A stretch of DNA of 63,252 nt, filler included, from Perkinsus chesapeaki ATCC PRA-425 (lineage: Eukaryota; Protista; Perkinsozoa): the NCBI GenBank assembly GCA_013115145.1. It is 7 parts of 7 records of this genome, joined end to end, with 100 filler letters (N's around TTAATTAATTAA, not from the genome) between each part and the next. Parts side by side here need not be neighbours in the genome. Positions count along the whole stretch, not along the records: positions 1 to 31,245 come from JAAPAO010000423.1; 6 more parts are not named here. One strand, 5' to 3'. The translations under genes and the position numbers were made by a program. The notes beneath the pieces were generated by a model. That model worked only from the letters and a program-made list of their open reading frames with translations, ran no database searches and was not told the DNA's origin. The number at the start of each line of letters is the position of its first letter. The stretch's first letter is position 1. Of this stretch, positions 1,114-30,755 are shown in pieces.

Positions 1114-1182
1114 ACTAAATTGATGTTTATAATAATGTTTCGTTCGATTGTATTATTTATATAATAGTTTACTTTAAACTAA

Positions 1183-2296: not shown

Positions 2297-5200
2297 TCAC
2301 CTATCTCGTGGATTGTTAGTTTTCATTCTCAACTCCACCACGAAATATCTTCTCTCTTGATCGACATAAAGTGGAACTCCGATAGTATCAAGTTCTGATG
2401 AAATATATGCAATAGAAATCCTACAAAAGCTCTTACCGGGGTTCGAACCCTGGACCTTCGCGTCATGTTGTTCAGGAGTCCATTGAAGCGTAAGTGGCGG
2501 TACAGCCGAGAGAGGAGGGTCTTGTTGGTTTACATCCATCAATGTGAATGTAGACGGATCAATGCGGCACCCCTGAGATTAGAAGAGTTCTATCAGCACG
2601 CATGCGCAAGCCTAAGACAACCTCAAGATAAAGATTCTCAACAACTATTGCTGTGGCAGTGGTGGTGGATTTATCTGCTTCCCTTCCTTCTTCTTTTCTT
2701 GTAAAATAACTTTTCAATTTCAATGATGTATCCAGCGGGACCTGATGAAATACAGGACCGAGAACAAGACGTCGTTAGGGATCAGGTAATGATTAACGGA
2801 ATCTTGCAGTGACAAACAGGCTGTGTCTGAAGTACTCGTTGTTTACCTTTAACATTTTGGCAGTCTGTTGCTTTAAAGCATTGAGGAGTACTATTGGATT
2901 AATAACCTGTCCGAAGTCGAGGGGTTCATCGATGGGGAAGTCGGTATGAGTAATACGAGTCAACCACCGTGTACGTAGAGATACATAACGAGTGGAGAGA
3001 GCCTAACAATGTCGATCACGTGATCGATTTCGATAAAGATACTTTCAGGTATCTTAGCGGCTCATCGGGGGCAAACTCCCAATGGGAACTCCACATTGGA
3101 GGTACCTCTTGTTTTATGAGACTCTCGGCCACACCTAGAATGAGAAAGTTAGAGTCACTGCGCCACGAAATTCGGTACTGATTATCTCGGAGGTCAGTGG
3201 GGAGCGAGATGTCGTCGGATTTGCGCAAAATCCTCTGAGCGCTTTCAAATGTCGATCAACCTGAGTATCTTCAGGTCGACCATGCACGATGCAAAACAGG
3301 TTGCCCACTGTGTCATATATTTGTGTCACCATCAGAACATCCATTTTAACACAGGCGACTGTTGGCGAATCTGTTGGTTCGGCGACACTCAACGGAGTCG
3401 AGTCAGCTTTCTGATGCTCAACTGTCCGTGTCGACCAGAATGACCAGAGGACTTCCATCTCCTAAAGATCAAATATGCGAAGGAGAAGAGGCGAAATAAA
3501 CAAGTGATTGTTACGAAGCCCGGCAGAAGCAAGAGGAGACGGATAATGTCCAAGAAACGTCCCGAGTTAGGCTCTGTACTGATATTTATTATTATAACTA
3601 TGCCATATGATGGATAGGGCGTTATTCCATACCAGCCTGTCTTATCGATACGTTGTTGGACACAAGGGGGCAGTTAGAAATAAGTGAGAAATACTATAAC
3701 ATGCTGTGGAGTTTCATAGAGGAAAAACAATTCTTACTATTTTCCAAAGCTTTATATCAATGGACTGCTGCTGATGCTGTTGGTTGAAAGATGAGCTCCC
3801 AGGGTGGACCCAACTTGAGTTCAAGATACGTATCTGGCTCACAACCTAAAAGATACTTTTCGAGGTTGATTAATGACATCTTGAGCAGCTCACTCGCTGA
3901 CTATTTACTATTTGTAGATTCCTATCAGCGTTTGCTGCCATCCCCAAATCAATATGATCGGCACCAGACCGAGGCTCGTGAATGAGATGCGATTTGAATG
4001 TATCTGACAGACCCCAGTTCAAATCCCATGTACCTGACATTTCTTGGACTAACCCAGACTAGTAGAAGCTGGCAGATGGAAAGGTAGGAGGGAGGACCCA
4101 TTATCGATCGCCTGATCGATTAAAAATAGCGAATATACTGACATAGGAATCCTACCTGCTGCGCAAAGATACCTTTAACATATTGCCGTATTAACCTCAA
4201 ATCAAAATGGTTATCCACTCGGCATCCATAAATCGCATTCTCAAGAATTCCTCGAAGTGTTTGCCATTCCACTGGAATGAAAAGGTCCCGGGTTCTAATC
4301 CCAGAGCCGACATTTTACCGTTTTCCTTATTAATAACCTGTAGAGCCGACTCACAAGCACTTTTCAGATCAGCGGTAGAGAAGCCATAATCCTTCGACCA
4401 TCCCTGAAAGGCTTGAACATAAGGTTAGATAAAGTTACGATAGATCGCTTACCTGTGGGATGAAGGCACATCTCACTTGGATGATAGCGTGAAAGCAAGC
4501 ACACATGAATATAACCTAAAATGGATACTTTAACATACAATAGAGTTAAAAAATGGGATAATAATAATCAATAATAATAAACTGAGGGGATAAATACGAC
4601 GATTAACCGCTTGTTCATGCTAGCCGCATTATGTGAGTTTTATACTTGGTTGATGGATATGGACATCATTCATTAGAGGCTGCATTTTCGTGGCGCGTGA
4701 CAGAATGCACCTGCGATCTTCTAACTTCTCCTCCGGATCCGAACCACGCCCCATCCCAGTCCTCGCAGATCCTCATAATGTTATTCCTGATTCCTGGTGG
4801 AGATTCATACGCCACTTTTAAAGATGATTCCAGTAATGTTACGGGGAAGTTATCTCGAGGCTCAGTGGTAAGCCAACACCTGCAAGGATTTGGCACATGA
4901 GCTAATAAGGATAATGTGAGACCTGAAATCTTTGTGGACTTCCGCCGTGCTCTTCTCAAGTTGAGCTTCAATTTTGGCTGCCCATCCGAGCGCCAGATGA
5001 AGATTCATAATAAGCACCCAATGGCCTTCTTTAATGCCCTCTAATCGAAGCGCGACCCAGGTTCGAACCCGAGCACTGACATCATTTACTTTGCAAAGAT
5101 CCCAAAACTTCCTGCTCATTTCCTCCACCAATAGCCACTGCAACCAGGTTATGCCTGGAATAACTTCACGCGCCACGAAATATTCGGCAACTACCCCTTA

Positions 5201-8200
5201 GCAGCTGCATGTTGTGCAATCTCTTTAGTTGGATCTGCTCCCGGTGTGACTATGAATAATATTGGTCGAATGGTGTTACGGGATGAAGCAGCAACATCAT
5301 CAGATAAGAATGTAAGTGATGTATTGGAAGAGGATGCCGATGACACAGTTAAGGACTGAGAAAAGTCGCTACCCGGATTTGAACCGGGGTTGTCACGGCC
5401 ACAACGTGACGTCCTAACCACTAGACGATAGCGACTTAGTACCCACCTGAGTACCTCTGAGGAGAACTTAGCGAGTGCGGATTCAAGCCGATCGGGTCGC
5501 AATGCTTGGACGATGAGAACTTTCTGGAAGGACGTTAGTTTCAAGGCCACTGACTGTGGGAACTTCTCCTCGCATGCATCCTCCTATGAATATTCAACAT
5601 AACATACTTTCTATCTAACCAGCTTCGAGCTAAGATACTCACTTGCATCCACTCTTGCCACAAACTTGAGGTCTCCATTTCAGCCTTTTCATTCAATCCC
5701 GGCGATGCCGAAATTAAATTAATGAGATGATCTTTCCTATCTGTTGGGCACCAGACCCTATGTCCCTCCTTTAAAGTTTCCTTCACATCGTCACGCGCCA
5801 CGAAATTCCCCGTGAACAACCTCCACTCGTCCTCTGTAATCGATCTAGCTGCAAATGTTTTCGACATCAATATGGCAAACGTAAGTCTGATAGCAACTCG
5901 CTCATGAGTTTCGTGGCGCGTGAAGTTACCTGTCATGCTTGAATAGCGCCCTGTTGACATAGCCCAGAACATTGGCTTTCATTCTCATCATCATTTCACC
6001 CAGACGCGCTTCAATTTGATCTGACGGTTGCTCAACGGTTGTGTCTGAGAGTTCACATTTTTTAGGTGGGGAGGCGATGATGAACTTACCAATGAGTGAA
6101 TCTCGGAAGATGTGGATGAATTCGGTTAGAGAAAAACGATACATCGGCCTAGTATCCAGGCTTCAAGCATGCAAGATGCGCAGTAGGTTACCCAATCCTC
6201 GCCATATCCAACATAAGCATGAAGAGTTCCGCCCCTTCCACGGCGACAGCTCGGAACATCTAACAGCTTCGCAATCGAACGTTTCGACTCTCTATTTACA
6301 TTGCGTTGTTTATCAAGATCGTCTTGCAATCTTATGCTCTCTTGCAAACTCTCAACGATACTCAATGCACTCGTTTTAGTCTTTTCAAGACTTTCCATTA
6401 ATTTTTCATTCTCCAAAATGTTACCCTCAACAGCCGACAACTGCCGCAACAAATCTTCCTCAACTTCCATCAACCGATTCTGAGCAAGCCTCCAAATCGA
6501 TCATGTGATCGATTACAACCCACCTTGAGAGTATCTTCTTTCTCTATCAATTCCCCTCGTCTCTTTTCTAGCTCTGGCCGTTCATGACCAATAACAATTC
6601 CTACCAACTGTGATACCCATTGCATCCCTAACTACGCCCCACCTAGCAATTGGTGCATTAGTCCTTGCCGTGTTGCTGTGAAATTAACGCCAATAAGGAG
6701 ACTTCGCTCATTTGGCGCCATTGTCTCAAAAACTCCAGCATCCCGACTTGTAAGGAGAAGTCGAAAATCATCAGAATAATCGACGCTTCGCTCCGCCAGT
6801 TGAACGACTCTTCTTGACCCAATCAATTGGTAATCTTTTCTCAAGATAGGCAAGAGAACCGGTGAGATATTTCGATCGACGCCGAGATTAACCATAAGTG
6901 TTTTACCAAACCTCAGAGACAGTTCGAGTGTGTGCAGGAATGTCGAATCATTCTGATCAACGCACACCAATGATGTACCACTATCGGACAGGTGCCGGGC
7001 AAGCCATCCAAATGCCTTCTGAGTTGCATCGGCAATTAATGGCACTGCCGCCTAGCAGAGTGAGGTGTGCAATATTGGCAACGAATTTCGGTATACCTTT
7101 TCACTCTTGAGAACGACTAATGCATTTTCTGCTGAGAGTTCGTCTCCTCCAAGACCTTGGCTTTTGAACTTCATCAGCTCGGACTCTTTTCCGCTAAATT
7201 TCTTGAATGAGAATCCCTCCATTGTTATGGATTTAGTTGCAAGCTTTGAGCTCCAATCAGAAAGATACTCTGTACGAGCAATTTCCGAGAGTGCTCCGAG
7301 GTAAACCATAAATGCAGCAGCCAACATGCTTTCGACAGGCAGCCGATCTGAGGCATCAGATCTTGGGACGAGTTAGACTTGGGGTGCCCAGGTGAGTGAG
7401 AATAACAGTGAAATCATGTAATACGTATAAATGTAATGAGCCATAGAAGAATATATAAACGTTATGCTCACCTATCTTGCTGGATATTTCAGCTACCTCT
7501 TTCTCCCATCGCGTCTTCTCGTCCCCAAGACCTTCGAGAAGACCAACTGCCTTATTCAAAGTTCCACGTGCATGTTCGACCCCTTGACGGAGCCCCTCAG
7601 CCTCTCCTGAAATACGATACTTCATTGCATCAAACAAACTTCGATTGTGCTCGGAATTTGGGCTTGACGGTTAAACACGACACTCATTTTCCGGGATTGT
7701 TGGAACAGCTCGAGTTCTACAGAACATTTACCATAACAGGAACGAATTGTTGCTGAGCTCCACAGATGATTGTGGCCATAACGGCTCGGAAGGTTTGCGC
7801 AAGCTGATTAACGAATTTGTGCACACCTTCAGCGAACCTTCGCGTGTCCAGCTCATCGTCGCCTGTACCACCCAGGTTGTCAGATGGTGCGATGTCGCAT
7901 TAACTTCATTCACAAGAAGTCTTCTTGCGAATGGCCGACACCCGCGTCGCGGCGGTGCAAAACGGTGACATGTTAGAGCAACGCGTAGCAACCAATCGTT
8001 GAATTCCTTAAGTGAACGTAAGTTTTTTTGGGATCCACGGAGCTTTTACTCTTCATGGCTGGAGATTTTAAACTTCTTCTCAAGTAGCACGTCTTCGAAA
8101 GGTGAGCTTGTTGTTGAGGATGGGTCGGCCGTAGGCTATATCGCCAACTCAGGCGTTTCAGCCGGCCTACCATCCAGTGGTTACACCACATCCCCTCCCT

Positions 8201-11200
8201 TCCATGAAGCATCAATGATGCTTATTATCTTCAAGATAATATCTTGCGTCCATTTGCTTGTCAGCGTAAAAGTAGATTATGCTTAGTTCAACAACTGCGT
8301 CGTCTCCTTTTTAGCATTCAGGGAATGAAATCCACTTCCAATGTACTACATTGAATGTAGAGGAGACAAGATCGCAGCCTTTGCTTCATTCCTAGCCCGC
8401 CCCCGTCCAAGCTTTCAATGCTACAGCTACAATTGGTGGTGCTGCTGGCAGATGTTCACATCAGGGTAATTGTTGACGTTGTAGTTTCTGTTCCGATCCA
8501 ACAGAAACCCAGGTTTATGTTAACACTAGCTTAATATTACTGGTCACATCATGTGACTCACATGACTCGGATCAGCAGGCTCCAACTTGGCTCCCAACTT
8601 TAATAAGAGCCTGGCCAGGCCCAGCTCGACAAGCTGGAGGCCAGCTGGGAGTCCCAACTACACTATCAAGCAAAACTTGATCACAATCGGCCGCGGATTC
8701 CGCCGCGCGGAAGACCATTACCGATGATCCATGATCAATGATCCTGAGATATGACGACCACAAGTTGAGAAAAAGCTATAGAAATACCGATCAGAGAGAT
8801 AGACAAAGACAAAGCCGAAGAGGTTACATAGATAGTTTCCCCATGTCTAATACTCACCGGTTCGAACAGCAAACTCCTTTTGCATCTCTTTAACCTTTTC
8901 ACCAATCCTCTCTCGCTCAACCTCACATTCTCGCAGTCTCATCCGAGCTCCATGAAGATCATCTTCAGTCTGACGTAATTTACTTTCCATCGGAGCTACC
9001 TTTTCTATCACTCGAGAGTATCTATGCGCAATCGACACAAATGATCTACAACAAATCCTATAATCATAATAACTCACCTCACATTAGCCTTCACCCACAT
9101 CGCCAACGGTGCAGCGGCCAAGCTCGCCCGTCTAATAACCGAATCCTCAAACGATCGACCCTTCTCTTGCAATAACTTCTCAACATCCTCTCTGGCTTTC
9201 GAAGAAATCTTGCGCGCATCGAAATTCAGCACTCTTTGAATCACTCCCGCTCCGGATAGGAATTTCTTCATGGCATTCCAACTGTTATCAGATCCTCCCA
9301 TCAACAACAGCACGCCATACAGCACATCATGGATCGCCTCTGGTGGCATTTTCAGTGCCCGAATTTCGTTTAAATTATCTTGCCGAATCGATCCAACTGC
9401 CCGTCGTGCCTCATCGATGAGCGGTTGAATCTCAGCCAACTCATTTTCGATCCTCGCGTGCTCCTGCGTCGCCTCCAACTCATCTTTGCGAGTTCGTTCG
9501 CTAAGAATCTCAACTTCAGCTTTGTATTTTGCTGCCTCTTCCATTCCCACTTCGATGCTCTTCAAAGCGCCGCTCGCCAGTTTCTCCTTTTCCGATAATT
9601 CTTTTTCTTTCGCTCGCGCCTCGGTCGCTAATCGATCAACCGTTACATGCATTTCTCTCAGTTTTCCCAAACCCTTCTGCAAGCGTTCCCCTTCCAGTCT
9701 GACTCTGGTATGATGATCCCCATACCCAATCCTCCACAACTTGAGCAAGGTCAGAAGATATCTTTGACTACATTTCGAGCTCTCATGGATATCCACAGTC
9801 GCTTCGCATAGCTCTTTATGATAGCTTACAGTTGTCTTCTCTCCATCACTGGCAAGGAGCTCCTTTAATCCCCTTGAAGTGATGATTAAAGATGACCTGA
9901 TAAATGAAGGTTTTTCTTATTTCTGGGACTTCTACTATCTACTAACTAGCAGTATGATGGCTAGTATTATTTAGTCCGTCAATTATGCCTAGTGACCCGG
10001 CAAGTCACTTTTATTTCACTAAACTAGTACGCATGATGGTGATAAACAGTTACATTTATCGAGCTGAGCCAACCGTAAACTATCCATCTCCGTTGGGCAA
10101 TTAATCAGCCTATCTGCTTTTGAGTAGGTTATGAGTTATTCATAATAATCAGGAAATAAAAAATCTTCAATATTCTCCTCCTCCCTTCTTACTTCCTACT
10201 CCAACTTGTCCAGTTCCATAAGACTGTAGTATTAGTGAACAATGCAGGGTTCGTCGATGTTATCTCATAATAATGCGGATGATCAGGGTTCAACGATAAA
10301 ACGAAAGCCAAGTTATCTTTCACGCGCCTCAAAAAGTATTCCTCGAGGCTTTCAGCTGGCATCGACTCTTGCTGATGTTGATCCTTGATTTGTCCCAAAA
10401 TCAATTCCTTCTCCTCTGCTTGAATTAATCCTCCCACATCTCCCGAAGCGACGAGGCTGTTCAAAACAGCAAAGAATTCCTCAGCAGATCCCCGCAGATG
10501 ATGGTCCTCGACAAAAACAATTATTTTTTCCCGCTCCGCTCCGCCTGCTGCTGCTTTAATAACTGCCGCTTTTATTTCTTTCAAATTTATTTTTCCTTCC
10601 ATCGCCGTTAATGTCGGCGTTATAATTTCGTATTGGTGCATATGAGCCATCAAAGCCAAACTGCTCCTCCTGCCGCAACCAGATCGACCAACCATCAGCA
10701 CGCATGCGCAGCCGCCCTGTCCGACACGAACGCCGAGAGCTCGATCAAGGCATGCTAAATTCTCCAGCACCTACTACGACTTGAGCAATCGAATAAAAAC
10801 CGCGCGCCACAAAACTAACCTCATCCACAATAGAAATTCCTAACGGCTTGATGTCTCTTTCATACTCTGCCAATCCAGAAGTTATCAATTGGCGATAATC
10901 AGACTTTGGAATTCGCTCAAGTCGGTCAAGTCGATGACCTGATGACCACTAATCAGATGAGCCGGTGTAAGAAATGATTATCAAAGAAAGAATACAAAAA
11001 GATACGAAAGTTATTGACCACGAATTCTGGTGGACGAAAATTCGACAAACGCATTTCGCTAAATCGGAGAATTTCTAAGTACTTAACACTTGTGTTAACA
11101 TAATAATTTTTCATTCGACCGTTCATCTCACCATTATTCTTCTTTCTCCTTCCTAATGCCATCAAACCACTCCATTTAGCTGCTTCTTTATAATCTGCTA

Positions 11201-14200
11201 TTTCCCCGAACCTCGCCTCTGCCACGCCACGAAGTATCATATCAAACTTAGCGCGGTGCTGACCACCAACCAAACGGTCTCTAAAAATCCTTCTACCTTC
11301 GTAACTGAATACCAACAATACCAATCCATAAGCACGTTAAATATGCCAAATCCCACTGAGGTGGCTCATCTAGAAGCCCATGATGACCTGTCGCTTACAA
11401 CACCTATGTAGTAACCAAAAGCTCCTCGAAATTGCCCTTCTCATTATCGATGAAAAACAACAGCTCCCCGAATGGCCGCATATTCGTTGAAGTCGTTTGT
11501 CTATGGTCCCTCAGACCATCATATAAACACATTTCGAGCACTTCAAAACGTTCCAGTATTTTCTATCAGTGATATGATGATGAGAGACCGAATAACAAGA
11601 ATATATCTCAAGTCCAAAATGATGCTATTAGCCCCTCCTCCTGCTGCTATTGGGGGTTACCTACCCCCAGGCCTCGATGAGTGTCGTATCATCTGCTCCT
11701 GCTCCTGCTGTGGTGGTGGTATTATATAATAATAACTGCTGTAACCAATTGCTTATATCGCGGGGGGTGAATACGTAATGAGAGTATCTAATAAATGGGG
11801 ACAATCGCCGACTAACAACTGGAGGAGGAGGAGATAACTAAATTGCATCAATCTGTTTCTAATCTCAACTTTTCTCGCATTTTCCTTATCCTTGCTGCCT
11901 AAAGTAGCACCACCATTTCTCCGACCAATACCGAGCTGCTCCCAAAGGGCGGCAATACTTGCAATATTATTACTTCGTTCTTCTTCCCCATCTTACGTTT
12001 CTGGTCCAAAGTGTTGAGCTATTTGGTAATAAACATCAACCATTCCTTCAACTGCTGACTGCATAGCTTTTGACTCGTTACCGATGATGATAGTTGAATA
12101 AATACATTCCAACTCATTGCGATCTGGAGGAGATATCCAAGCTTGACAGATGCCCGAGGTGAACCTGAACCAACAACACACCGTCACTGCGCCACGAAAA
12201 TCCACATATTTCCGCCCAGCCGTACAAAAATGTAGTTCAATCTCTTTCTGTGGTGGTATTTCACTCGACAAGTGATTTCCGTGGCAAAGTCGAACCGAAA
12301 GGAAATTAAAAAATTTAACAGTTGAACTTCACAGTAGCTCGAGACTACACCGTATAAATTGAATTATGGAACGGTGGCTTGCGAATCAATTAGGTCAAGA
12401 GCTGATTGAAAATGTGATGCAGAGGAAAGAAATTTTAGGAAAAGTTCAAATACGCTTTCAATCCAAAGGAGCGTCGTCTTCGATGAGAAAATATGTCCCA
12501 AAACCGATCGTCGGATCAGAACTTACCGTTTTGAGATGACATGTCGTCCAAGTGATGATGATGGTGCAACAGACGATATAAATTGGATACTCTCCAAGGT
12601 AGCCGTCTCCAAATCATAATCATTAAAACTCTGATAACAAAGATACACGGGCTGGGATTCGAACCCGCGACCTACGCCATAAGAGACCATCTCCTGTAAC
12701 GCCGCCACGATTTGAGTTGTTCCATATTTATCTGGTTTGGTAAGATTAACGTCATCGATCATCAACACAGTTCGTTGGCCCGATCTCGGTCTGTAAGTCC
12801 TCCCTTTTGGACCTTCAAAAATGACAAGTCCACAAATGATGGAGGTTCAATTCAACAATGTCGCTTGTCTACTACTTCATATCATTGTTAACAATCTATA
12901 TAATAGTTTATAAGCAATAATAATACAGCCCGAAAAACTTTTAATGATATCATCATCTATTATATTACCTACTTGTTATAACAATTATACTATCTAGGTA
13001 ATTTATGAGACATTTTCATTTTCCACCTTCTGCAAAAAAGTGCAAAGGATTCTACCTTTTCCATCTTGAGACGATTATTTTTGAAAATTCACCTTCCCTC
13101 CAACGCCCCCACCAATCTCAAATTTTTTCTCAAGCCAACTAGTTCAAATAATGACCACCATCTCTGGTAACACTATCGGTGTTTGAGGAACAGCGAGCCG
13201 TCGGCGGCGGGGGCGATCGATGATGGATCCTTACCAGCTCCAATGTGGCAAATACTCCCCAATTTAATTGCAACATCAGCACCCTTGCTTTGACCGTTAC
13301 ACGATAAAGTTGCCCAACGAGCTGCTGCTCCGTTAATGTGAGCTGCTGATGAGATTTCAGGGCAACATTTTAATAAGTCACCTGTTAGTTCACTTTTAAT
13401 AAATAAACGTTTGCCCGATCCTTCCGGGCCACAGATGATGAAGTGATAACCTAAAGGATTACAATAGGAGGTCAAAGGAGCCATTGTCATTCACGAAGGT
13501 GCGTGGCGGAGAAGGCAGGAAAATTCTATTATTTTTCTGAAATTTTCCCGACTGTGGATGAATCTAAGTGTACTCGGATGGAGACAGGTTCGATAGTATA
13601 TAATGGGTAGTAAAATATCGCTTGTATTTCATAACTCACCTTTTCTAAGCCATCCACTAAATAAATCAATCATAGTTGCCACATGCCGGGTTCGAACCAG
13701 GGTCGTCGTCGTCGTTGTCACATCTCCACTATAGGTTACTTCTTCGCTGTACCTGTGAAATCTATAAATAAAAGTATCTTTCAGACTTCTTATCACCTCA
13801 CCAAACCGCCAATGTCATCACAAAACGTGCAATTACGAGGATTGCCCTCATCTGGTAATACCTCCTTGCCACATTTGAAGACGAATCTAAAGACAACAAC
13901 AGAAGCAGCTGCAGCTAGAGGTGTCAGAAAACAACTAACAAACATCGCAATCGTCGGTAATTTAATTCGATACTAACGAAGCGAACACATTCATTGAAAT
14001 GATAATATTGAGAATGTCCTTATTTATCCCAACCAATCTCACCTATATAATTGTTGTGCCAGACTATCATTGGATATGCAACCACCAAGACCACGTGCAA
14101 CCGCCACCAAGAACTTTCCCTGAAAACAACATCATAATAGCCTACTAGTAGAGCGAGTAACCGATGCATTCTTCAATCCAAAGGGCGTGAGTTCTATCCC

Positions 14201-17200: not shown

Positions 17201-20200
17201 CCTTGTCATACTTTTATAATCTATACCTTCATCACAGTTAAATACCAACACTTGACGACCCAACCAACTTCCTAATGCTTTAACAGATTCAGTCTTACCT
17301 AGATAGTAGTAAAGATACCCCAACGACTGCGCACTATGAAGAATCTCACCGGTCCCAGCAGGCCCATAAGGATTTCCTCCGTACCCAAGATGCATTCCAT
17401 GCATTAAAGTCATGTAACATTTATCAGTGAGGGGAGTGTGGACGAGCTTTGGAGAGTTACCCTGAGGAATGATGAAAGTTCGGAAAATAATCGACAAACC
17501 TGAACAGAAAAATAAATGATATCTGAATACAAATCTGGGAAGTTCTCAAGACTCTCGAATCTTTTCATGTTGCCGATTTTTAAGAGAGCAACTTTTTAAG
17601 AATTTAACAACTAAAGTTCTGCAACTGTTTTGCGTCGAGTAGATGACCATCACCTGGTATTCAAACGAGTATGACTGCCGACAAGCCAGCATCTCAACAT
17701 GCGCATCGCCATTCGTGGAAGAGTAGAACCGTAACTGTTTATACCTGAATATATCAAAGTCAAGGTCGACCTAAAGATACTCCTACCATCCCCAATCTTT
17801 CCTCTTGATAACCCTTTTATCGACAATCTCTTCAATAATGGATGCATTATGAATAACATCCATTATCAAACCCTCCAGCTTCGCTCCGCTAAGATTATCT
17901 GCATCTTTTTGCATTTTCGTAAGGTCCCCTAATCTTCCCATTAATTTAAAATGAATATCTTTCATTGACTTTCCACTTTCCAGACAACCTTCAACCTCCG
18001 CAGTGAATCCAACAGCCTCCCCAAGGCACAGAATCTGTCCCGGTAAATCGAGCAAGTCACCGCCTTTGTAATTAGCAAGAAGAATCTTCAGAGTGCGTAC
18101 CATGCACGCATCAAGCTCACTTAGCCATACCTCAATCGATCGCGTGATCGATATTGCATCTATGAGTTTAACTTCTTCTCCCATCGAACTCACCATTGCT
18201 GTTATTCGATTGTTTCCATCGATTTCAACTTTATAAATTCCCGCAAACAAATTTTTCAAATGGCCTTGAACAACTCCAGAATCGTCACTGCGCCCCAAAA
18301 TCTCCAAAAGATCTTCATCGCCGATGAAGTAGAGCCTCGGACAAGTCAACCTCTTTTCTTCAAGATACTCGTTCAACGCTTTCTGGCATCGATCGATTTG
18401 ATCAGCCATCGAATTCAACTCTGAAACTTTACACTTTTCCCGATAGCCGGTCAATAAGCTGCTAACAGCACGATTGCTCTTCGACGAGTATGTTGAATTG
18501 ACAAAGTGTCTGAAGGCTTTGTCGACTCGCGAGAATCTTTCTTTCTCGGATGGTAAAGCTCCACGTCCGAGGACAGGCTCGAGATAGACCCACTTCCGCT
18601 GCACCTGATAGAAAACAGAAAAGATTGACTTCTGAGAATCCAACCGACGTGAGCGACAATGTACCAAAGTTGCACAATCTAACAGCCCTCATTAGCATCG
18701 TTATGTGGCATTTTTATTCAATGCCATAATAGGTCTAGTAACAATACCGATAATTCTTGCCCTATTCCCCCAAGCCTCACTTTATTAAGTAGTTGTAAAA
18801 TTTGAGCCAATGCATTTAACTTGTCCTCAATTCTTTCAACTTCATCTTTAAATCCATAATAAAACTTCGACTCCTTCAACGATAAACATAAGCTTTGTTG
18901 TTCACTCAATCCACTTAATAAATCTTGCCATTCTTTTATAATATCCAACCTCACTCCATCACATGTTATATATTCTGACACCTCTAGCTGTGTCGCATCA
19001 AACCAACAATTAAGCTCGGATACAGCTTCCCGAAGAGTCACCTCTCCAACGGCGCGCGCCACTAATTCCCGAATAGTTTTTTCGTTTTTAAGGATTTCAT
19101 CACAATTTTCGAGGATAGATGAAACCGTTAGATTCTCCAATCGAGTGTCTTTGGGTAGTCCAATGATAGAAAAGAGAATCTGAAAGCAAAAAAGTCACGC
19201 GCCACGAAATTACTGATAAGGAAATCGATCGCGTGATCGACTTGGACTTACTCTCCAGTGATCCTTCTCGAATGCCTCGCCCGTTATACATGATTTTATA
19301 ACAGGGTAAGTATTTTCCAGCGCGCCACAAAACTTCATCATCATTGCGAGCACCGAAGTGGGTCTCGAGCCCCCAGAGCATTCTCGGATCTGATCAGTTA
19401 CGGTCAAGTAATTTCGCCCAATTCAATCCGAATCAAATTTCTCGAAAAATTCCTGGTAAAAATTTCCTAATTTTCGCCAAAATTTTTTCGGAAACTTCCG
19501 GCAGGTTCATCAAATCTGATACAAGGTCTCAAATTGCTCGGAAAATTTCTGTTATGAGACGATGATTTCCTGGGCAAGTTGTCGGTCACCTTGGGAATCC
19601 ATTCGTCGATGAATCGAGCAAGTTTGGAGACATTTGGTCGAAAGTCCAACCAGAGCTGCTCGCCGAGCTCGAACAAGGACGAACGAAATTCGGCAAAGAC
19701 TCTCCAAGAAGAAATGGCGGCGGCTATCTCGTCATTAACAATAGAATAACCTTCAATCTGAAATGGGATGAGAAAAACGTCACGCGCCATGAAATTGTAC
19801 TTGTGGCTGATCCAAGCCGAATTCAGCACAGTCACTGTAGAGAGCATCTGGACAGAGGCAATTCTTGCGCGCCACGAAACTACTTCCTACCTGCCGATTT
19901 CTGTACCTCTGACCAGTCGTTCTGCCATTCTTCCATTCGTTGACAAATTTCCATTAAGCCTTCCGAAAGTGGGAAATCATGTTCATCAACAATCGGTTTT
20001 AAAGCCTAAATCGATCAAACCTCGCTCAACCTAAAGATACTTCTCACCTTCCATCGAGATTCGTATCTTTCAACTTCATTTTTAACCTCCAAAATCCGAC
20101 TGCCGATTTGTTCTTTCAATTTCTTCTTCAATTCCTCCACAACATTTCCGAAACTTTCTATTTTCTCCGTCACTGCGCCACATAATTCTCGTACTTCTTT

Positions 20201-23200
20201 CAAATCTATCACGCCCCCTCCAGAGCTCTCGACTAATCTGGCTCGTCCGGCAATCGCGTCCAGTTTTTGATTTATTTCCGGCAGCTCAATCGCCAACTTG
20301 CGCACTTCAAGCTCGGATTCGGATATTCCTTTCACATTTTGTGGCGCAGCGGTCATTTTCCCGAGAGAATCCTGCAACTTATCGACAAGACTTTTAACTT
20401 GCTCATTCAACCGTCGTTTCAGTGTTATAACCAATTCAAAGGAAAACCTAGAATCTTAGGTTGATGCGTGCAAGATACGAAATATCTTAGCTTACCTGTC
20501 TATCTGCTCCTCCACAACTGTCTTCAATATAACAGTATGAAGCACCATACAATCGACTTTAACAAAATCAGGTAGTCTTTCCAATTCTTTTTTCTTTTTC
20601 CTCATCCCCTTTAAATTATCTTCCCAAACACTCTCCTCTTCATTTTCCATACCTTCCACTATTTCCAATAATTTCTGCTCTCCGAGGCCCCCCAATACCT
20701 GACAGTTCATTGCCATGTAGAACGACGATAGAAATCGAATTTTAATATTCTATCATTTTTCCGCCGAAAATCGTCCCACAAAGCAGCTCTTTGATACATT
20801 GAAAAACTGGGCTTTTCTATCTCCATTTTCGAGGGTGTAAAGACCTGCTGGAATCCTTCCGAGTTTTCCTGCCGGCCGGCCTGTTCAACAAACTTTTCGG
20901 ACTATGCAATCATATTTCCCGATTGTTATTGCTGAAAGATAGAAGCTCCCTTGGAGAAGGTCGCCGGTTCGATCCACGGTGAGGGTATTTTTACCCCCCA
21001 ATGAGAGACTTTAGTTTTTTCTTCTTCCAACTTGTCCAACATTTCCTCGCCTCGACTGTAAACAATCGCCAATGCTTTTTTAACCTCAGAAGAATCTAAG
21101 AGAAGCATCCTCTTGAGGTATGAAATGCGCGCTTCAAGCTAAGATACCCTCGGTTAGCTTCCTGTAGATCTCAGGTGCTCCTCTGAAGCCTGCAATGCTC
21201 TCAATTCGCCCCACAAATTTTCCAACTTCTCGGTAATATTTCTGATCAACCCAAAATATATCAAATCGATCGCGCGATCGATTATTACTTTTCTAACCTC
21301 CTCCACTGTCGGCTTCAATGTCACTTCTTTTCGACTCACAATCACATCGACGCGTATCTTTAGGTCAACTTTCAAGCACCCGATGAGAATCTACAACCTC
21401 CGGAATGGTCTTATTAAATCCGAGCAGCCCTCTCATCAATTGGACTTCGACAATCGCTTTCAGTTGACGATCCAAATGAGCTCTCCAAGGCTTAGTCAAC
21501 GAATCCTATCAAAGGCGTATCTTTTGGAGTTATGAAAAGCCAGCTTGAACCTCCTTATCAGCTCCAACCCTTTCGGCCATTATGTCCACTTTCCTCTGTA
21601 ACTCCATGAGCCTCATCTTCCACATGTCATATTGACGGAGGATACACAACGAAGATAAATTAAGCAAACCACATAGGATCTGAAAGAGCGAGTTCATCAT
21701 CATCATCAATCCTCAAGTATAACTTATTGTGATAACTAAATGATCAAGTAAGGAAATACGGATATGGCATCTGAATCCTACATTCAACCATTAATGGCAA
21801 TTTCAAAGGATAGTCCAATTCTTGTTCGACGACACGATACTATTTCTGACTCAACTACAGTTTCCTACGGCATGAAGATGATGATCCGGAAATGAAGGGC
21901 AAGGTGGATGAAAATAATATTTGAGACTATCATCACTGTCGGTGCTCAGGCCCAACAACCAATCTCACTTCCGACCCAGCCACCCTCCGAAGAATAATGA
22001 TAATTGTCCTGATAAAAGACACGCTATTACGAGACATAGTACGATGTATACTTCGACGGTACTTGGACTCTGCCCTGGATACTCCACACAAAAAAATGTC
22101 GACAAGAGCATTCTCCATCCTAGCTGCCCCCCCAACTACTACTACTTCTGCATGTGCATTCCTCAACATCTCATTTATCCCTTTTAACCTTCTCCTGCCC
22201 TCCTCCGCTCGATCGGTGAATGTCTTCAATTGCTCCAAAGTATTCCAATTCGTATTAGATGACTTCGTGAGTGTCTCCTCAAATGCCAATGCTTCGTTCA
22301 ACAGCATCGGTTTTTGAAATGGTAGAAGGTCCAATGATAGACTATTATAAAATATACAAACTTCTCGCAATGTCACCGCAAACTTAAAGTATCTTTCCCA
22401 TACTTCAACCTCACCCGCTAGATTCTTCGGAATGGCATACCCAGCATTTTCGAATGCCCTCGCCTCCTTGATAGCTACCAGAAGCCTTCCGTCATAATTA
22501 ACATTCAAATCTCCGCTGGCTATAGATTTGATGGAAACTACTGCAGCTGATACGTCCAAGCGGACCGCCGAAAGACTTTCGCACCATTTCTTAAAAAGCG
22601 CATCTTTCCTCGCTTTAATTCGCCTCAATAATTCCCGACACTCATTTGCCACACCACTCGCTCCCTCCAAATCACGGAGGAATCCTGAGTTGGGAGCAAC
22701 TGCCGACAACATCTGTTCGACTTCTCCCCGCGCCACACTAAGGTTCTTCAAATCAGAAATGAAATCGATTGACTTTTCCCGTCCTAGATTATCTTTCATC
22801 TCTGAAATATGCCTCTTCAACATCATCATTATCGTCTCCCTTTCACTTCGTAATGCATCCTTCATCACAGAAAACTCCATCATGGCCCCAAAACGACCAG
22901 ACACTCCACGAATAGTCGCCACGACATCCCCCCCGACAGTTGACGAGCTCAGCTGCCGAGATATCACAGGTTTCAACCTCAATACGATCGGCTCGGCCTT
23001 CCTCGCATATTGGATGAAGAAGCTTCCCCATTGAGCATCCGAATATTCACTAATACCGAAGACACTCCCACGAGTGTTAATGTTGAGTAAATCCTCAGCA
23101 AGGCTTTCCACTTCGGCCGGAGTGATCGAAGATGAGCTGTCGGATGCTATCAGTCGTAGTTGTTCTAGTTGTTGACGAATTGAATTGATACAACGAATTC

Positions 23201-25264
23201 GGTCGGCCAAACGAATGGGAGAGTTGAGTACCTTAAATGGGCTGTGCCGAGAATTGAACTCGGGACCTCTCGCACCCTAAGCGAGAATCATACCACTAGA
23301 CCACACAGCCGATGAGAAAGACCACCTCTACAAACCCTGCTTCACCTCTTTCATATATTCCCTTCCCAACAGACTCCCATCTTGAACACTCTCCACCCAT
23401 CTGTCGAGGACCTGATGACGCAATACGAAAAAGCGCGCGCCCAGTTAATCGATTTTCGCCCAACCCACCTTGACCGCTTCTCGAAGTACAATGGACGTTG
23501 ATTTATCTTGGTGGAGCCGAAAGATATCTTTGAGGTCAATTAAGCGGCGACTGACTTCCGAGCAGACTTTGAACGATATGACAGTTAAAAGTCTGATAAA
23601 AGGACAAATCGATCAAATGGGACGCATTCGACCTCCAAAAATATCTTACCGTTTCATTCTTTTAGCTGGATAAGGAGGATCTATATTCTCATGAAGGTTC
23701 TCCAATATCATCAAAGTCTCATCTATCTCACCATAAATGTTCGACAGTGGCTGTTGTTGTTGTTGCTGCTGAGGGAGGAGAACTGAAATTTATTCAACTA
23801 TAATCATGACAACAATCGCTACCACGAATACGACTACACACCAACATCGAGATGCTCCTCGCAACTCATAGTGAATCATCGAAATCTAAGCACGCTGCTA
23901 TTGCCAAGCAAATGATCAATACGAATCAACAACATTATCACACCCACTAACCGAGTCATCTCTCACCTCCATTTGATATATTAAATATTAAAGGTGCATT
24001 GGTCGAACACTTCGCAAACTCCTCCGCGATTGTCGATGCCTGATAAGTGCTATTCTTCAATATCCTTCCTATCAACTTCCCTATCAATGGCTATGGACAT
24101 TGCTAATCGTGTCATGCTTATTTTCACTCTATTAACACAATCCCTAGCTTCTTGCTACATCATCATCACGAATCTAGATGATGATGATGATGCCGCCCTG
24201 GCCTATTCTCATTATCTTCCTCTTCAATATTAACCCCCTTAAAGACTCATCATACCGACTTTTTCTCAACGTATCTCGAAATTATTGACACCCCCTCCGT
24301 CACCCTTCTGCCACCGTTTCCCGATTCCTTCATTCCTCTCCAAAAAGCAGCCTCATCATACGGGATAATCACCTATTCAGAAGTCTTGCTAATCTTACCA
24401 AATCTTGCATTTCCTCAACGCCTCCTTACATTGTCGGTAACCTCCTCGTTGTAATTCATAACATCCGATGATCCTCTCTGCAGTGATGCTTCCAAACCAG
24501 CTCTCAGCGATTCACTAAAAGCCCCAAAAATTTCAGAAAAATAGAATTTCCAAAAATTCTTCTACATCGATCCTCCGACGTCCGTGTCCCCCAGTAACTG
24601 CGGAAATAAGGCTCCCCCAATTTCTGGGCGCGTGACTCTGCCTCACCTTCGAGTATACTTCTCTAAGAATGTTATCCAACCCTTGCCTTGCCCCTCTCCC
24701 GTCGATTGTGACTGTCATGACGCTTCTCGTCATCATTGTTGTTGCCGAGGACAGCTCACCCATACCAGTTTTGATGAACACCACCACGGTGCTGCTACCA
24801 GCTGAGAATGGTTAAAATAATCAAACAACAAATATTCCCCAAACCTTCAAGAATTGGGACTATTTGATCGTAAATGCTTGTCAATGTGACATTCCTGAGC
24901 GTCCCTCCATTGCCTGTTTGACTTTCATAGGCGAACAGGACCTGACAAGCAGATAAGCAGCAGCCTTCTAACAAAAGGACACCCCCGACAGATCGATATC
25001 TTTTCCAGTTCGCGCGAACATCTCCGAAAGTCACTTTTCCGATGTTCACCTTAGTGTTTATGTCATCCATAAATCTCTCGAGTTCAGTATTAGACTCCGG
25101 GTTGGACCTGCTGCAAACGTCACTCGCCACAAAATACTATTTAACCTGAAGGTAGCTCTCTCTCTTTGGCTAATACCCAAAAGCGCCATGCATGCTTCAA
25201 CGATGAACTCTTTACGAGGATCAGGTTGAGTATGATAATCAAATGAAGCGTTGTAGTCAGCCAT
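2297..25264 (-). CDS. DYNC2H1: Cytoplasmic dynein-2 heavy chain (retrograde IFT motor), dozens of exons; 3' end approximate
   Basis: Collinear exon peptides: N-term [11 protein letters not shown]; tail [29 protein letters not shown]; QRKWVYLEP and [15 protein letters not shown]; AAA1 GPAGTG|KTESVK and VFNCDEG; AAA2 GPSGSGKT; AAA3 GPEGSGK; AAA4 GRSGCGRR (dynein-2-type degenerate P-loop); stalk [14 protein letters not shown]; QALRPDRL; [10 protein letters not shown]; C-term [11 protein letters not shown]. Confidence 0.95.
5364..5435 (-). tRNA. tRNA-His(GTG) inside a ~90-nt dynein intron
   Basis: GTCGCTA/TAGCGAC acceptor, CGTC/GACG D-stem, TCACG-TTGTGGC-CGTGA anticodon arm, CCCGG-TTCAAAT-CCGGG T-arm, followed by TTTT. 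Confidence 0.9.
16488..16559 (-). pseudogene. Degenerate tRNA-Pro(CGG) in a dynein intron
   Basis: Colinear with the intact Pro tRNA at 23239-23310, but with 2 acceptor-stem mismatches and 1 anticodon-stem mismatch. A- and B-boxes intact. Confidence 0.65.
23239..23310 (-). tRNA. tRNA-Pro(AGG) inside a ~94-nt dynein intron
   Basis: GGCTGTG/CACAGCC acceptor, CTCGC-TTAGGGT-GCGAG anticodon arm, CCGAG-TTCAATT-CTCGG T-arm; all three fully paired. Confidence 0.92.
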
Positions 25265-26825: not shown

Positions 26826-29483
26826 AATTAATAAAAATGTGAAGCTGAAGAAATGATGAGAGATCATAGGTCAAGAAGATCGCATTGAACATTCATCATA
26901 CACTTCAATGATCTGATGAGATTGCCTTCGATCATCTGATGGCCAGGCTCATCGGAGACGTCGCATCACTCAAGGATGAACCACCAAAATTAACGTTGTC
27001 ACAGATGTGCGCGCGTACATATGATATATGCGCACGCCCTGCCGATCGATTAGTTATTGTGTCTCGCTTTTGCTGTATCTAAGGTTGAAGCATGCAAGAT
27101 ACTAGGGAGGTTGAGAATGATTCACTGAAGTCCGTGTATTATCTTAGACTGACTTTCGGGTTAAATGCGTTGGGGCAAGAGTGGGCGCGGAATGGTATAT
27201 TAGGTCAGCGAATGGCGCAGCGCAAGATACGCGATATATCACCGTATATCACTAACTTCTTAGCTTGCCGCGTGCAAGATACCCGGCAGGTTGGTCCGTC
27301 TACCATGTCCTCCCGTCCACGTCAACTGATATCCACCGAAGAATACCTTGGTAAGACCCTTTCCTCCTCTGACTTGCATTTCTTTTTAGATTTCTTCGAC
27401 ACCACCGATACCGAGACCACCTCGGATTCTCCTACAATCCATATCCAATCTCGAACATTGAAATCTTCCGACCAATTGAAGTAACACTTTACCTCTATAG
27501 TGCTCATCTACAATCCCTTTTGATTGTATAGTAATGTCATCCAATCGTAAGTTGAACAAAGAGGTTATCGTAATTTATCATCAGTACAGTGTAGTTTATG
27601 ATAAAATATTGTTTTTCACTCACCGACAGAGACTCATTCGAAAGCATTTTATATCGGCTTTATGGTTGTCAAACCGAAAACATCAAACAGACTATTCAAC
27701 CTACTAAACTGATGACAAGTTGTCAAGTTTAGGTTGGATGAAGCTGATTGCAGATTGGCAGTTGAGAGGGTCCTCGAAGCGGTGAGAAGGTTTAGTAATT
27801 TCGTGGCGAGTGACGATTAAGATACTTTGGATATGTCTGCAGCTTCACAGGAGTGGTCAAACTCAAGGGTCAGCTCGTTTGTTGAAGATTATCAACGTAG
27901 CGCAATCTGCTGGGGATTATGGATCCATCATAGAGGCCTATGTCCGACATGTTTTGTATCATGCATGCTCCAACCTACGATACCATTCATAGGCTGGCCC
28001 GTATGAGCTGCTAAACACCCTTTCAAAGGAGATGCCTTTGCTTTTCCAAGCCATTCATTTTCAATTTAACTTTAACGATCCAACTTGGCGACATAAGTTA
28101 AAGTAATCCTACCTCGGATCGAACCTGGGCCATTCGATTGCTATTTCAGTCGCGCCCTTGAAGCCAGAGAGGCTGTTTTGGAATTCGGCCTTCAGCCAGC
28201 GGGATATTCGGGTAGGTATAGGAGATATGTCGTGAAGTATGATATATCATTACACCCTTACATTTTAGATGTCCCAACAGCACCTATCAGGAACAATTCA
28301 CGAAGACGACCGGAAACTGCCAGATATCGAACGAATCAGAACACAGAAGTGAGGGGGGGGGGGGGTTGGGTGACAAATATTAAGATTATTGATCCTCTCA
28401 GCTGCACCATCATCGGTGTTATAGATTTCGTCGTCCAACTAGTGCCCCTCTTTCAAAGGCTTATCCAACAACAGAATCACGTTATCCATGACTCCTCCTC
28501 CTCCTTGACTTAGTGTTGGTTAATATAAGGGAACGGTCTATTGCGATGTTTTATCAGGTTGCGGTCTCCGAAGCCGTAGACCTTGTTAGATTTTTACAGT
28601 GCGATTCCTTACTGTAGCATTTCACAGCCCCCCCGCGCTGGCTTGACACTTTAAGAGTAGATACCATGAAAAAATGTTAATATTTAATCGATTTGGCTTG
28701 TCGTTCTAATAACGTTACTCCAGTAATATTACTATTAAATGGTCCAAGTTAACTTTACTGAAGAGGTTGAACTAGAACGAGTTCATGTAAGATGGTTGAT
28801 TCGGAAGTTGGACGGGATACCGCTCATGCTACCTTGTATCAGAATCTCAGCCCACATAATCGACAAGAATACTTGGAACGAGTCTTCGCCAAATTTGATA
28901 CTGTAAGCTTGTGGTATCATAGGTTGAAGCGTGCAAGATACGCAGTACCTTGAGAACCAACACTTTATCAGGACGGTAGTGGAGAGATCGAGTATCCGGA
29001 GCTTCTTGCTGCCATGCGATTTCTTGGCATTCAAACAAGCTCCTTCATTGTTAAGAAGTTGTTCTCGGATATGGATCAGGTAGATGTTCCATGCCGGAAT
29101 CGAACCCGATATCTTTCGATTGCTAGGATAAGTCGGGTACAATCGACGTTGAAGAGTTTATAGAATTCTTCTTCAAAGTTAAGAAGTTGGATGATCTAAA
29201 AGAAGAGCTCAGCCATAGGAGGAAGCAATATATATTTCGTCATAGGATATTAAACATGTAATGAAAATGCCTCGCCCCCGCCTCCTCCTCCCCCGCCTAA
29301 GACAACTCTTCCAAATTGGCCCAATCTGAGCCCCTCTATCGAGGGGCCCAATTCCCCTTCATATGTTATCAGGAAACGGCTTAGAATTGCTACTATTTCT
29401 TGTCGGGGAGCACTAATTAAAGGGCTTCACGACTACTTGAACAGTTTATTCTCCGACCCACATCGGTCGTCGTATCGATTGTT

Positions 29484-29825
29484 GTGGATCAATTTAGTGC
29501 CCCTCTTTTGGGACCTTCTCTTGTCAGGTATATTTTGGTATTATTTTTTACAGTATTCATTCTGGTTATTATTTACTTATCGGATGTAGCAACATCTGGT
29601 GATTCAGCCATAGAAGGAACACAAGCAACGTACTTCAATAATTTCATGGCGCGTGACGATTCATACACCACCTACAGGTCATCCTCCTCCTCCTCGTCCT
29701 CACAAGTGACCAGCAAATCCTCCTCTACTTCTCCTGTTGTCGTAGCCATATTTGCCCTCAGTGGCATTTTGCTCATCACCATCGCCTACGTGGTCATTGG
29801 CCCTATCATAATGCTCAAGTATTAA
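29484..29825 (+). CDS. Small membrane protein with Ser-rich linker, intron-containing
   Basis: Two hydrophobic segments and a poly-Ser run; GT-AG intron 29630-29677 carries motif A. Confidence 0.3.
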   Translation: MDQFSAPLLGPSLVRYILVLFFTVFILVIIYLSDVATSGDSAIEGTQATYFNNFMARDDSYTTYRSSSSSSSSQVTSKSSSTSPVVVAIFALSGILLITIAYVVIGPIIMLKY

Positions 29826-30755
29826 CAGAAATCTACCTTTCTTTCGTGAATCAATTTTCGAAGGTACAAACGAAAGCAAGACGAGAAGAATGGCAAGACA
29901 CAGTATCTAAACAGGCAGCGGTCCATAGGTGGGCAATTCCACCTTTATTTCGGGCATGTCCCGTTTGTTGATATTATCTTTAAGCAGCAGATTCACGCTA
30001 CCCTAGCTACTTTGACAGAGCTAACTCATGGCAAGTAAAAGGGTTTGATGGTGGGAATGATGATAGTAAGTTTAATGCCAGCACACGAGTTCGATCCCTG
30101 GATGGGGCATTTAGTGTCAGCGGGAGGAGGACGATTATCAAGATTGAAGAGTCAGGAAAGCATACGAGGAAGTGACAAGGTTATAATAAAAGGGAATCTT
30201 TTTTGGACGGGAAATTTCGGAAAATTCCACGAATTGTCTTTGTTGTTTTTTTTAAATTCTGCATGCCGCCAATGGTCGGTGAGGGTGGTCCAGATATGGG
30301 ATGATTTCACCGAGATATTACTTCTCTGTGGATCAGTGGATACGTGTGGAGTTTGAAGTCGTAGGGAGTACTTATGACGTGGATGTCGTCGCGCGCCACA
30401 AAATGAGTTTTTATGTTTTCTTCAGTTACGGAGGTCATTTATCAGGCAAGCATCTCAGGTGTCATTGGCAGGAAATAATGTTTTGCCTCAACTTGAAATT
30501 CAACGTAATCTTATTGGCCGAAAATAAATCAATTATACAACCTTTAGCGTTTACCGGATTTTACCACAATAAGCAAGAAGATGAGGATAAGGCCTTTGTT
30601 GGTCCAACTAGGTGTTTTAACCCACTCAATACTAAAAAATATGCATGGCAACCTCCTGTGTAGTCCTGTTGATCGCCACTCTTGTTTTGAGTTACAGTTG
30701 TCATCAATCCGATCTATTTTGAATCTTGCACGCGTGAACCTGAGATATTTTTCCT

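Follow-up and report, generated by a model that had tools for sequence, protein, structure and literature searches.

The window analysed here is a stretch of 63,252 nucleotides, filler included, from Perkinsus chesapeaki ATCC PRA-425. Its first part (positions 1-31,245, JAAPAO010000423.1) contains a large gene with many very short introns, and in these mini-introns (<=80 nt) recurs a conserved sequence of 18-19 nt, which we term motif A. The host gene occupies 2300-25230 on the minus strand and comprises ~4200 codons and at least 50 introns in the gene model. The minus strand encodes the Pfam domains DHC_N1, DHC_N2, AAA_6, AAA_8, MT and AAA_9 in order, and a profile built from 21 full-length dynein-2 proteins matches it in a collinear chain over positions 194-4179 of 4194. 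Judged by these matches, the gene is the cytoplasmic dynein-2 heavy chain, the motor of retrograde intraflagellar transport. Its exons are most closely related to a protein cluster with members from Perkinsus marinus ATCC 50983 (66% identity), and the window genome is accordingly that of a perkinsozoan alveolate with ties to P. marinus, from which it is clearly distinct.

All results refer to two loci (~57 kb in total) of two species, the prefixes W and Pm denoting positions in the window genome and in P. marinus, respectively. Exact-protein look-ups with window open reading frames and with a piece of a P. marinus gene returned no hit, and no named Perkinsus paralogs came out of a second protein search. 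The orthologous P. marinus locus, L030, corresponds to GG680063.1:14034-48493. Both loci have the gene order MAM33 followed by dynein-2, and the 5' exons of the window gene align to L030 4413-6359. The tail of L030 past 25630 was excluded, as it repeats the 3' half of the dynein gene, an assembly duplicate; this second, gap-flanked copy (L030 25730-34460) is probably an uncollapsed haplotype or a mis-assembly. Ab initio intron chaining without homology over-predicted introns, and profile-guided models were used instead. The latter read through some in-frame mini-introns, and the borders of motif-bearing introns were therefore curated against P. marinus. The evidence for the intron borders consists of GT-AG ends, reading frame and protein homology; those of 19848-19890, of 4516-4701 and of three introns of a neighbouring gene in particular are inferred.

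With up to 3 mismatches allowed, the 18-mer AATTTCGTGGCGCGTGAC(G), with the core string GTGGCGCG, matches 12 times in the 31.2-kb piece (shuffles expect 0.01), and the most over-represented 10-mers of the window are sub-words of AATTTCGTGGCGCGTGAC. A position matrix seeded with 17 clear copies from the window and its P. marinus counterpart defines a conserved 19-nt block, AATTTCGTGGCGCGTGACG. At a threshold of >=10 bits the matrix has 16 hits in the window, compared to 0.17 in Markov controls, which agrees with the approximately 16 close copies counted in the initial annotation of this DNA. The block is composed of three near-invariant parts, namely AATTT, TGGCGC and GTGAC(G); the most variable positions are 6-7, where CG is mostly replaced by TG or CA. 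Four further copies (3154, 12183, 18284 and 20169) are one base longer and follow GCGCAGTGAC, and a sub-variant GCGAGTGAC is real and occurs at 25119 and 27797. The recurrence of sub-variants at 3154/12183 and 25119/27797 had been pointed out before and was seen again. CpG depletion, a sign of methylation, was looked for and is absent (observed/expected 0.95-1.06). Likewise, a search of Rfam up to an E-value of 10 returned no partial match to tRNA, small nuclear RNA, signal recognition particle RNA, 7SL or U6 at any copy of motif A. The RNA of motif-bearing introns folds no better than shuffled sequence, and no conserved fold was found. A literature search on the letters of the core string alone is uninformative. 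The same holds for a metagenome scan with the exact 18-mer: the 28 loci obtained, nearly all of them on high-GC bacterial contigs, amount to about the number expected by chance, and each has a single copy without the other intron modules described below.

The host gene and the copies of motif A are the following.

2300..25230, minus strand: cytoplasmic dynein-2 (intraflagellar transport) heavy chain, assigned by Pfam, dynein-2 profile and gene model.
3154..3172, minus strand: motif A variant GCGCAGTGAC, sense, in mini-intron 3135-3178 (44 nt); the P. marinus ortholog reads AATTTCGTGGCGCTGAGAC (L030 ~25369).
4684..4701, plus strand: motif A, antisense, at the start of the modelled 186-nt intron 4516-4701; no P. 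marinus counterpart was found.
5165..5182, minus strand: motif A, sense, in mini-intron 5155-5194 (40 nt); its P. marinus counterpart scores 13.4 bits and is partly decayed.
5790..5807, minus strand: motif A, sense, exonic; the coding sequence reads GNFVARD; P. marinus counterpart at L030 23137-23152.
5907..5924, plus strand: motif A, antisense, in mini-intron 5887-5929 (43 nt); antisense in P. marinus as well (L030 23017-23032).
10799..10816, minus strand: degenerate motif A AGTTTTGTGGCGCGCGGT, sense (copy W10805), in mini-intron 10771-10819 (49 nt); 13.9 bits.
12183..12201, minus strand: motif A variant GCGCAGTGAC, sense, in mini-intron 12165-12205 (41 nt); decayed in P. marinus.
15113..15130, minus strand: motif A, sense, in mini-intron 15101-15140 (40 nt); P. 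marinus has GTAATTTTGTGGCGCGTGACGGTGGTTTTAG in the orthologous intron.
19194..19211, minus strand: exact motif A, sense, in intron 19180-19251 (72 nt), which it shares with palindrome B.
19779..19796, minus strand: motif A, sense, in mini-intron 19758-19800 (43 nt).
19864..19881, minus strand: degenerate motif A AGTTTCGTGGCGCGCAAG, sense, in the probable mini-intron 19848-19890; 15.7 bits.
24619..24636, plus strand: motif A, antisense, in mini-intron 24598-24646 (49 nt), whose borders are common to P. marinus.
25119..25136, minus strand: motif A variant GCGAGTGAC, sense, in mini-intron 25111-25145 (35 nt); absent from the P. marinus intron at this site.
27797..27814, plus strand: motif A, sense, in the putative intron 27782-27842 (61 nt, borders GTGAGA...CTGCAG) of a neighbouring putative plus-strand gene.
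29640..29657, plus strand: motif A, sense, in the putative intron 29630-29677 (48 nt), which is in frame without a stop codon (intron or coding insert).
30388..30405, minus strand: motif A, antisense to a putative plus-strand gene, in the putative intron 30344-30425.

In total, 13 good copies lie in the dynein gene and 3 in the putative neighbouring plus-strand gene(s) at 27-31 kb. Those of the dynein gene comprise nine sense copies in GT-AG mini-introns of 35-72 nt, three antisense intronic copies and one exonic copy. Of the ~10 kb of dynein intron DNA, mini-introns account for only ~1.6 kb, but 12 of the 13 intronic copies fall within them (p ~1e-8 if copies were distributed uniformly). The location of motif A in mini-introns, as originally proposed, therefore holds for most copies; the exceptions are the coding copy 5790-5807, four weak exonic look-alikes (20169, 19047, 18284 and 10315), and the copy at 4684 within a 186-nt intron. 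The dynein profile aligns through the exonic copy with zero insertion. No copy is found in the intergenic DNA of both loci (~3 kb), and the statement that the motif is distributed inside genes rather than at promoters stands. The introns proposed at 3135-3178, 5155-5194, 5887-5929 (antisense), 15101-15140, 19758-19800 and 24598-24646 (antisense) have GT-AG ends and fit both the reading frame and the P. marinus exon alignment; the one at 29630-29677 is plausible, but as an in-frame segment it is kept as putative only. Among modelled introns the orientation is ~11 sense to 4 antisense, close to the three quarters initially estimated, which is a tendency only (binomial p ~0.12).

Several of these introns have a particular structure. 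In the modelled intron 4516-4701, the reverse complement of the motif, GTCACG, supplies the GT. The 3' half of intron 19180-19251, GTAATTTCG...TTTCAG, is itself a complete 34-nt GT-AG unit, such that the whole resembles two complete GT-AG units in tandem, the first of which is the only one in P. marinus. The borders of 19848-19890 were assigned by local inspection only and lie in a poorly conserved stretch, and the putative intron 30344-30425 is flanked by open frames of 101 and 78 codons. We also observe a perfect 20-nt inverted repeat (5161-5180 / 5909-5928) that consists of a sense and an antisense copy of motif A, 728 nt apart. Both arms carry the non-consensus tail GTGAAGTTA, and the repeat is not conserved in P. 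marinus; it could reflect recent conversion or long-range RNA pairing.

The dynein proteins of both species are 66% identical over 2210 aligned codons, while only 36% of the four-fold degenerate sites are identical (n=569), such that neutral divergence is essentially saturated. Nevertheless, motif A is present in sense orientation in orthologous introns of both species at W19779/Pm10763, W15113/Pm15127, W10805/Pm18931 and W3154/Pm25369, and in antisense orientation at W5907/Pm23017. For example, the P. marinus ortholog of intron 19758-19800 contains an exact 16-mer (L001 2933-2948, equal to L030 10763), and the intron orthologous to 10771-10819, whose window copy is degenerate, has a good one (L030 18931). 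Two further pairs, W12183 and W5165, are partly decayed on the P. marinus side. Over these seven orthologous intron pairs, 85% of the motif columns are identical (114/134), compared to 59% of the other columns of the same introns (81/138). The latter value equals the chance level of 58%, obtained from unrelated mini-introns aligned in like manner. The exonic copy W5790 is likewise present in P. marinus (Pm23137), with 5/6 third-codon positions identical. All motif-bearing introns that can be checked in P. marinus (11/11) have an intron at the same site, although its content differs in three to five of them. In the P. marinus dynein gene as a whole the matrix has 8 hits, and the motif hence also occurs outside the locus in which it was first noticed. 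Motif A is a conserved non-coding cis-element that occupies orthologous positions with an identity above the neutral level. Since it is kept at the same introns though neutral sites are fully diverged, we take it for a working signal; the pattern of orthologous presence and absence indicates that single copies turn over while most are kept by selection.

The function of this signal is probably in the recognition and splicing of tiny introns, to judge from the tie to mini-introns, the absence from intergenic DNA, a candidate role as branch point, the conserved spacing to the 3' splice site and the excess of sense copies. In sense introns, 2-15 nt (in one case 40 nt) separate the GT from the motif, and another 8-28 nt separate the motif from the AG. 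GTGAC has its A at 9-29 nt from the 3' splice site, in agreement with the branch-point pattern yUnAy, whose A is found ~8-40 nt upstream of the AG, and GTGAC also fits the TNAC pattern of likely branch sites in other introns of the dynein gene. Between the motif and the terminal AG there is no A whatsoever in W25119, W19194, W12183 and Pm15127, and in W15113 and W5165 the sole other A is 6-7 nt from the splice site. With no alternative A suitably placed, at least six sense introns have a single plausible branch point, the A of GTGAC. Orthologous introns retain the spacing between motif and 3' splice site (22 vs 24, 13 vs 12 and 20 vs 13 nt), but not the spacing between motif and 5' splice site (4 vs 21 and 10 vs 2). 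Three of the 17 seed copies (W27797, W19194 and Pm15127) and the weaker copy Pm16595 have a GT immediately before AATTT, hence the motif is able to begin at intron position +3. The shortest motif introns (31-34 nt) correspond approximately to GT, motif, T-run and AG.

We therefore favour, with a probability of roughly 0.4, a reading in which motif A is an identity element or extended branch-site element of one class of mini-introns. A sense intron would be laid out as 5' splice site, 2-15 nt, AATTTCGTGGCGC, GTGAC, 8-28 mostly T-rich nt and AG, and the A of GTGAC would serve as branch point. The 13 bases upstream of GTGAC would constitute an intron-identity or splicing-enhancer element that acts on the pre-mRNA and enables the recognition of introns of 35-50 nt with weak 5' splice sites. 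The element might be read by a dedicated protein or, by base-pairing, by a small RNA; the latter would carry GTCACGCGCCACGAAATT. Copies in both orientations, one tandem unit beside another intron and one exonic copy suggest an ancient spread of a tiny intron unit as the probable origin, whose core would have been held by selection afterwards. Splicing as modelled, action on RNA and the identity of the reader are inferred from sequence.

Several observations weigh against this interpretation. The copy W5907 is kept antisense in both species (L030 23017), which an RNA element read in sense leaves unexplained, and GTGAC is kept in antisense copies as well as in sense ones. The motif occurs in only ~1/3 of the mini-introns of the dynein gene and hence is not a general requirement for splicing. 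Copies also turn over between the species: those at 25119 and 24619 have no counterpart, the P. marinus introns at these sites holding a different recurrent module (C-like in the ortholog of 24598-24646), and the P. marinus intron orthologous to 19180-19251 holds the palindrome only, without motif A. Conversely, a weaker copy at Pm16595 (16591-16614) has none in the window. The conserved antisense and exonic copies, together with the retention of GTGAC in antisense, point to the recognition of double-stranded DNA or else to pairing of antisense and sense RNA. The latter would reconcile W5907 with an element acting on RNA, provided that this copy pairs with the conserved exonic sense copy. In both species, the conserved antisense copy is 100-120 nt upstream of the exonic one, and the duplex amounts to ~-33 kcal/mol.

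The first alternative is that motif A is a double-stranded DNA site, such that a sequence-specific protein (a transcription or architectural factor) binds the 18-19 bp motif in the gene body. Introns would then hold the motif as the free non-coding DNA of a compact genome, and sense copies would merely double as branch sites. Beyond the occurrence of both orientations, the conserved antisense copy and the exonic copy with its conserved third-codon positions, the length and the three-part make-up (AATTT / TGGCGC / GTGACG) would suit a multi-domain DNA binder. A perfect palindrome, ATCGATCACGTGATCGAT, and sequences similar to the tRNA B box are enriched in the same introns, again in both orientations; two clusters of ~4 copies fall within 1-1.2 kb; and the turnover between species is as known for binding sites. 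However, a DNA site does not account for the concentration of copies in mini-introns, given that long introns hold ~5x more DNA, nor for their absence from ~3 kb of intergenic and promoter-side DNA. It is also at odds with the conserved 3' splice-site spacing and a motif that supplies the branch A, and the motif matches no known binding consensus. We consider a DNA site somewhat unlikely, albeit with an appreciable chance of being correct.

A second alternative considers the motif as the relic of a tiny intron-generating mobile element ('mini-introner'), with a function limited to ordinary splice signals. The motif makes up approximately a whole intron and is found in both orientations; its reverse complement begins with GT, as at the opening of intron 4516-4701 (GTCACG). 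Intron 19180-19251 with its two tandem units, the single in-frame exonic copy and several other short modules that recur in the same class of introns fit such an origin as well. We note that the 150-nt flanks of the copies have nothing in common except neighbouring motif copies and the palindrome, and that neither terminal inverted repeats nor target-site duplications are seen at the curated intron borders. As, in addition, nearly all introns are at orthologous positions in both species, motif A is neither the end of a dispersed transposon, which the initial annotation had named as a refuting outcome, nor the product of a recent introner burst. A neutral relic cannot explain the maintenance of a core that is 85% conserved while the remainder of the same introns is at chance; it possibly explains the origin. 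As an account of the present motif it is improbable.

A bolder variant of the splicing interpretation has a low probability of about the size one gives to an outside bet. Here, perkinsid mini-introns would be built out of a limited set of modules kept by selection (motif A, a palindrome centred on CACGTG, a module with GTATCTT/AAGATAC and pieces similar to the tRNA T-arm/B box), and introns with motif A would form a distinct spliceosomal class, defined by an 18-nt identity element that contains the branch site and for which a dedicated small RNA or protein would be the reader. Such a class might be a lineage-specific analogue of U12-type introns in its logic, and antisense copies might act as partners in cis that mask sense copies.

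It is quite improbable that motif A is a Pol III-type promoter box, that is, an A-box-like remnant of a tRNA or 7SL-type gene that binds TFIIIC beside B-box-like remnants. The dynein introns do contain three complete tRNA genes in sense orientation, two of them kept in P. marinus, and the B-box-like sequence GGTTCGANNCC is enriched in introns (7 vs 0.28 expected). The four GCGCAGTGAC variants read TGGCGCAGTGA, which we take to resemble the tRNA A-box consensus, a lead only and not a test; by eye, the four variant copies match 10/11 positions of the consensus TRGCNNAGTGG, and the main variant does not match. The main variant also lacks A14 of the A box, the conserved AATTTCG part has no A-box counterpart, and no B box follows, the short introns leaving no room for gene-like spacing. 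The negative Rfam result for tRNA, 7SL and U6 likewise disagrees with a Pol III box. Likenesses to the U6 3' region, the 7SL 5' region, the tRNA A box and SCB/MCB boxes are not claimed.

The initial annotation had compared the motif to an E2F/DP site and a class-C bHLH box, and this is very improbable: E2F is present in some alveolates (Cryptosporidium; PMC4117751), and the CpG-rich core, GGCGCG beside a T-run and CGCGTG in 9/16 copies, is similar, but the consensus TTTSSCGC is matched by 0/16 copies on either strand, the CACGCG hexamer (9/16 copies) covers only 6 of 18-19 conserved bases, either box has only a third of the length of the conserved block, and neither the location in mini-introns instead of upstream nor the host, an intraflagellar-transport dynein and not a cell-cycle gene, is fitting.

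Besides motif A, the mini-introns contain other recurrent modules. The palindrome module ATCGATC(A/G)CG(T/C)GATCGAT is found at 3009-3036, 4101-4128, 6494-6521, 18133-18160, 19222-19249 and 21263-21290, mostly in mini-introns. It is exonic once (18133), where it is also present in P. marinus (L001 ~4721), and it is conserved in the P. marinus intron orthologous to 19180-19251. A third module consists of GTATCTT...AAGATAC arms with a GCGTGCAAGAT/TTGAAGC core and often opens mini-introns (GTATCTT); its sites include 20448-20495, 21096-21147, 17745-17786, 20006-20047, 27077-27112 and 28916-28951. It appears loosely similar to the 3' part of the Perkinsus spliced leader, ATCTTGGCTCAAG (PMC9399869). 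A fourth intron core, GCGTTGAGGAAATGCAAG, is found at 14338-14384 and 24373-24429 as well as at L030 15882-15911, the ortholog of 14338-14384.

Three complete tRNA genes, all on the minus strand, are nested in sense orientation in dynein introns. The gene for tRNA-His(GTG) (5364-5435, 61.7 bits) lies within an in-frame intron of ~91 nt (5356-5446) that consists of GTGGGTACTAA, the tRNA and TTTCTCAG; at this site P. marinus has a 31-nt intron with a T-arm-like remnant only (L030 23519-23549). The genes for tRNA-Pro(CGG) and tRNA-Pro(AGG), at 16488-16559 and 23239-23310, are both kept in the orthologous P. marinus introns (L030 14005-14076 and 7779-7850). The seven copies of the T-arm/B-box-like GGTTCGANNCC mentioned above lie outside the called tRNA genes, where P. 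marinus has five (0.12 expected). Sites are 2439, 5060, 12655, 13688, 16042 and 29096 in the window and 14452, 17076, 22641, 23841 and 24469 in L030. They are mostly intronic and occur in both orientations; two of them, W 12655 and L030 17076, occupy orthologous mini-introns.

Two tandem repeats are located outside the dynein gene. Downstream of its 3' end, the plus-strand open reading frame 523-1110 includes a GA-rich repeat with a period of 15 nt (801-1055, ~14-17 copies). In P. marinus, an array of 18 copies of a 53-nt unit lies upstream of MAM33 (L030 1184-2130).

We class motif A as a conserved intronic cis-element or intron family, with a small chance that it marks a new class of introns. 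At 35-50 nt, introns approach the physical limit for assembly of the spliceosome, which raises the question of how they are recognised when the 5' splice site is weak. For a subset of them, motif A offers a long, nearly invariant internal element that is kept while synonymous sites are saturated. Perkinsozoa are the sister group of dinoflagellates and include serious parasites of shellfish, and their gene expression is poorly understood. If the role in splicing is true, the motif provides a handle on intron definition in alveolates, which can be tested directly because P. marinus is transfectable; as a DNA site, motif A would instead be one of the first cis-regulatory motifs to be defined in Perkinsus. 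Among the papers returned by full-text searches that included Perkinsus, none was found to describe such a motif, and there is no mention of it in the papers on Amoebophrya introners (PMC7789003) and on the spliced leader of Perkinsozoa (PMC9399869).

Among known systems, the introners of Micromonas, Aureococcus, fungi, dinoflagellates and Amoebophrya (PMC7789003, PMC9860276) are similar in that a family recurs in many introns of one genome, in both orientations, and includes the alveolate neighbourhood. In contrast to introners, motif A introns share only a core of 18-19 nt, without similarity over the whole length and without terminal repeats. Instead of recent gains, they are ancient introns at orthologous sites of both species, and their core is under purifying selection. 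A second comparison is to the extended branch-point and 3' intron motifs of intron-poor protists and yeasts (PMC2483917), which are likewise reported to be long motifs in short introns with the branch A near the 3' splice site. Compared with these, motif A is confined to ~1/3 of the mini-introns in a gene rich in introns, its distance to the 3' splice site is variable (9-29 nt), 13 bases upstream of the branch site are conserved, and antisense and exonic copies occur. U12-type introns would be the closest parallel under the boldest interpretation, as a minority class with a long conserved internal sequence that includes the branch site and pairs with a dedicated small nuclear RNA; neither the U12 5' splice site RTATCCTT nor the branch site TCCTTAAC is found in the intron sequences compared here. 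Finally, the G-run splicing enhancers of small vertebrate introns are likewise located just inside short introns, near weak 5' splice sites, and aid intron definition. These enhancers are degenerate and 3-6 nt long, whereas motif A extends over 18-19 nt and is nearly invariant.

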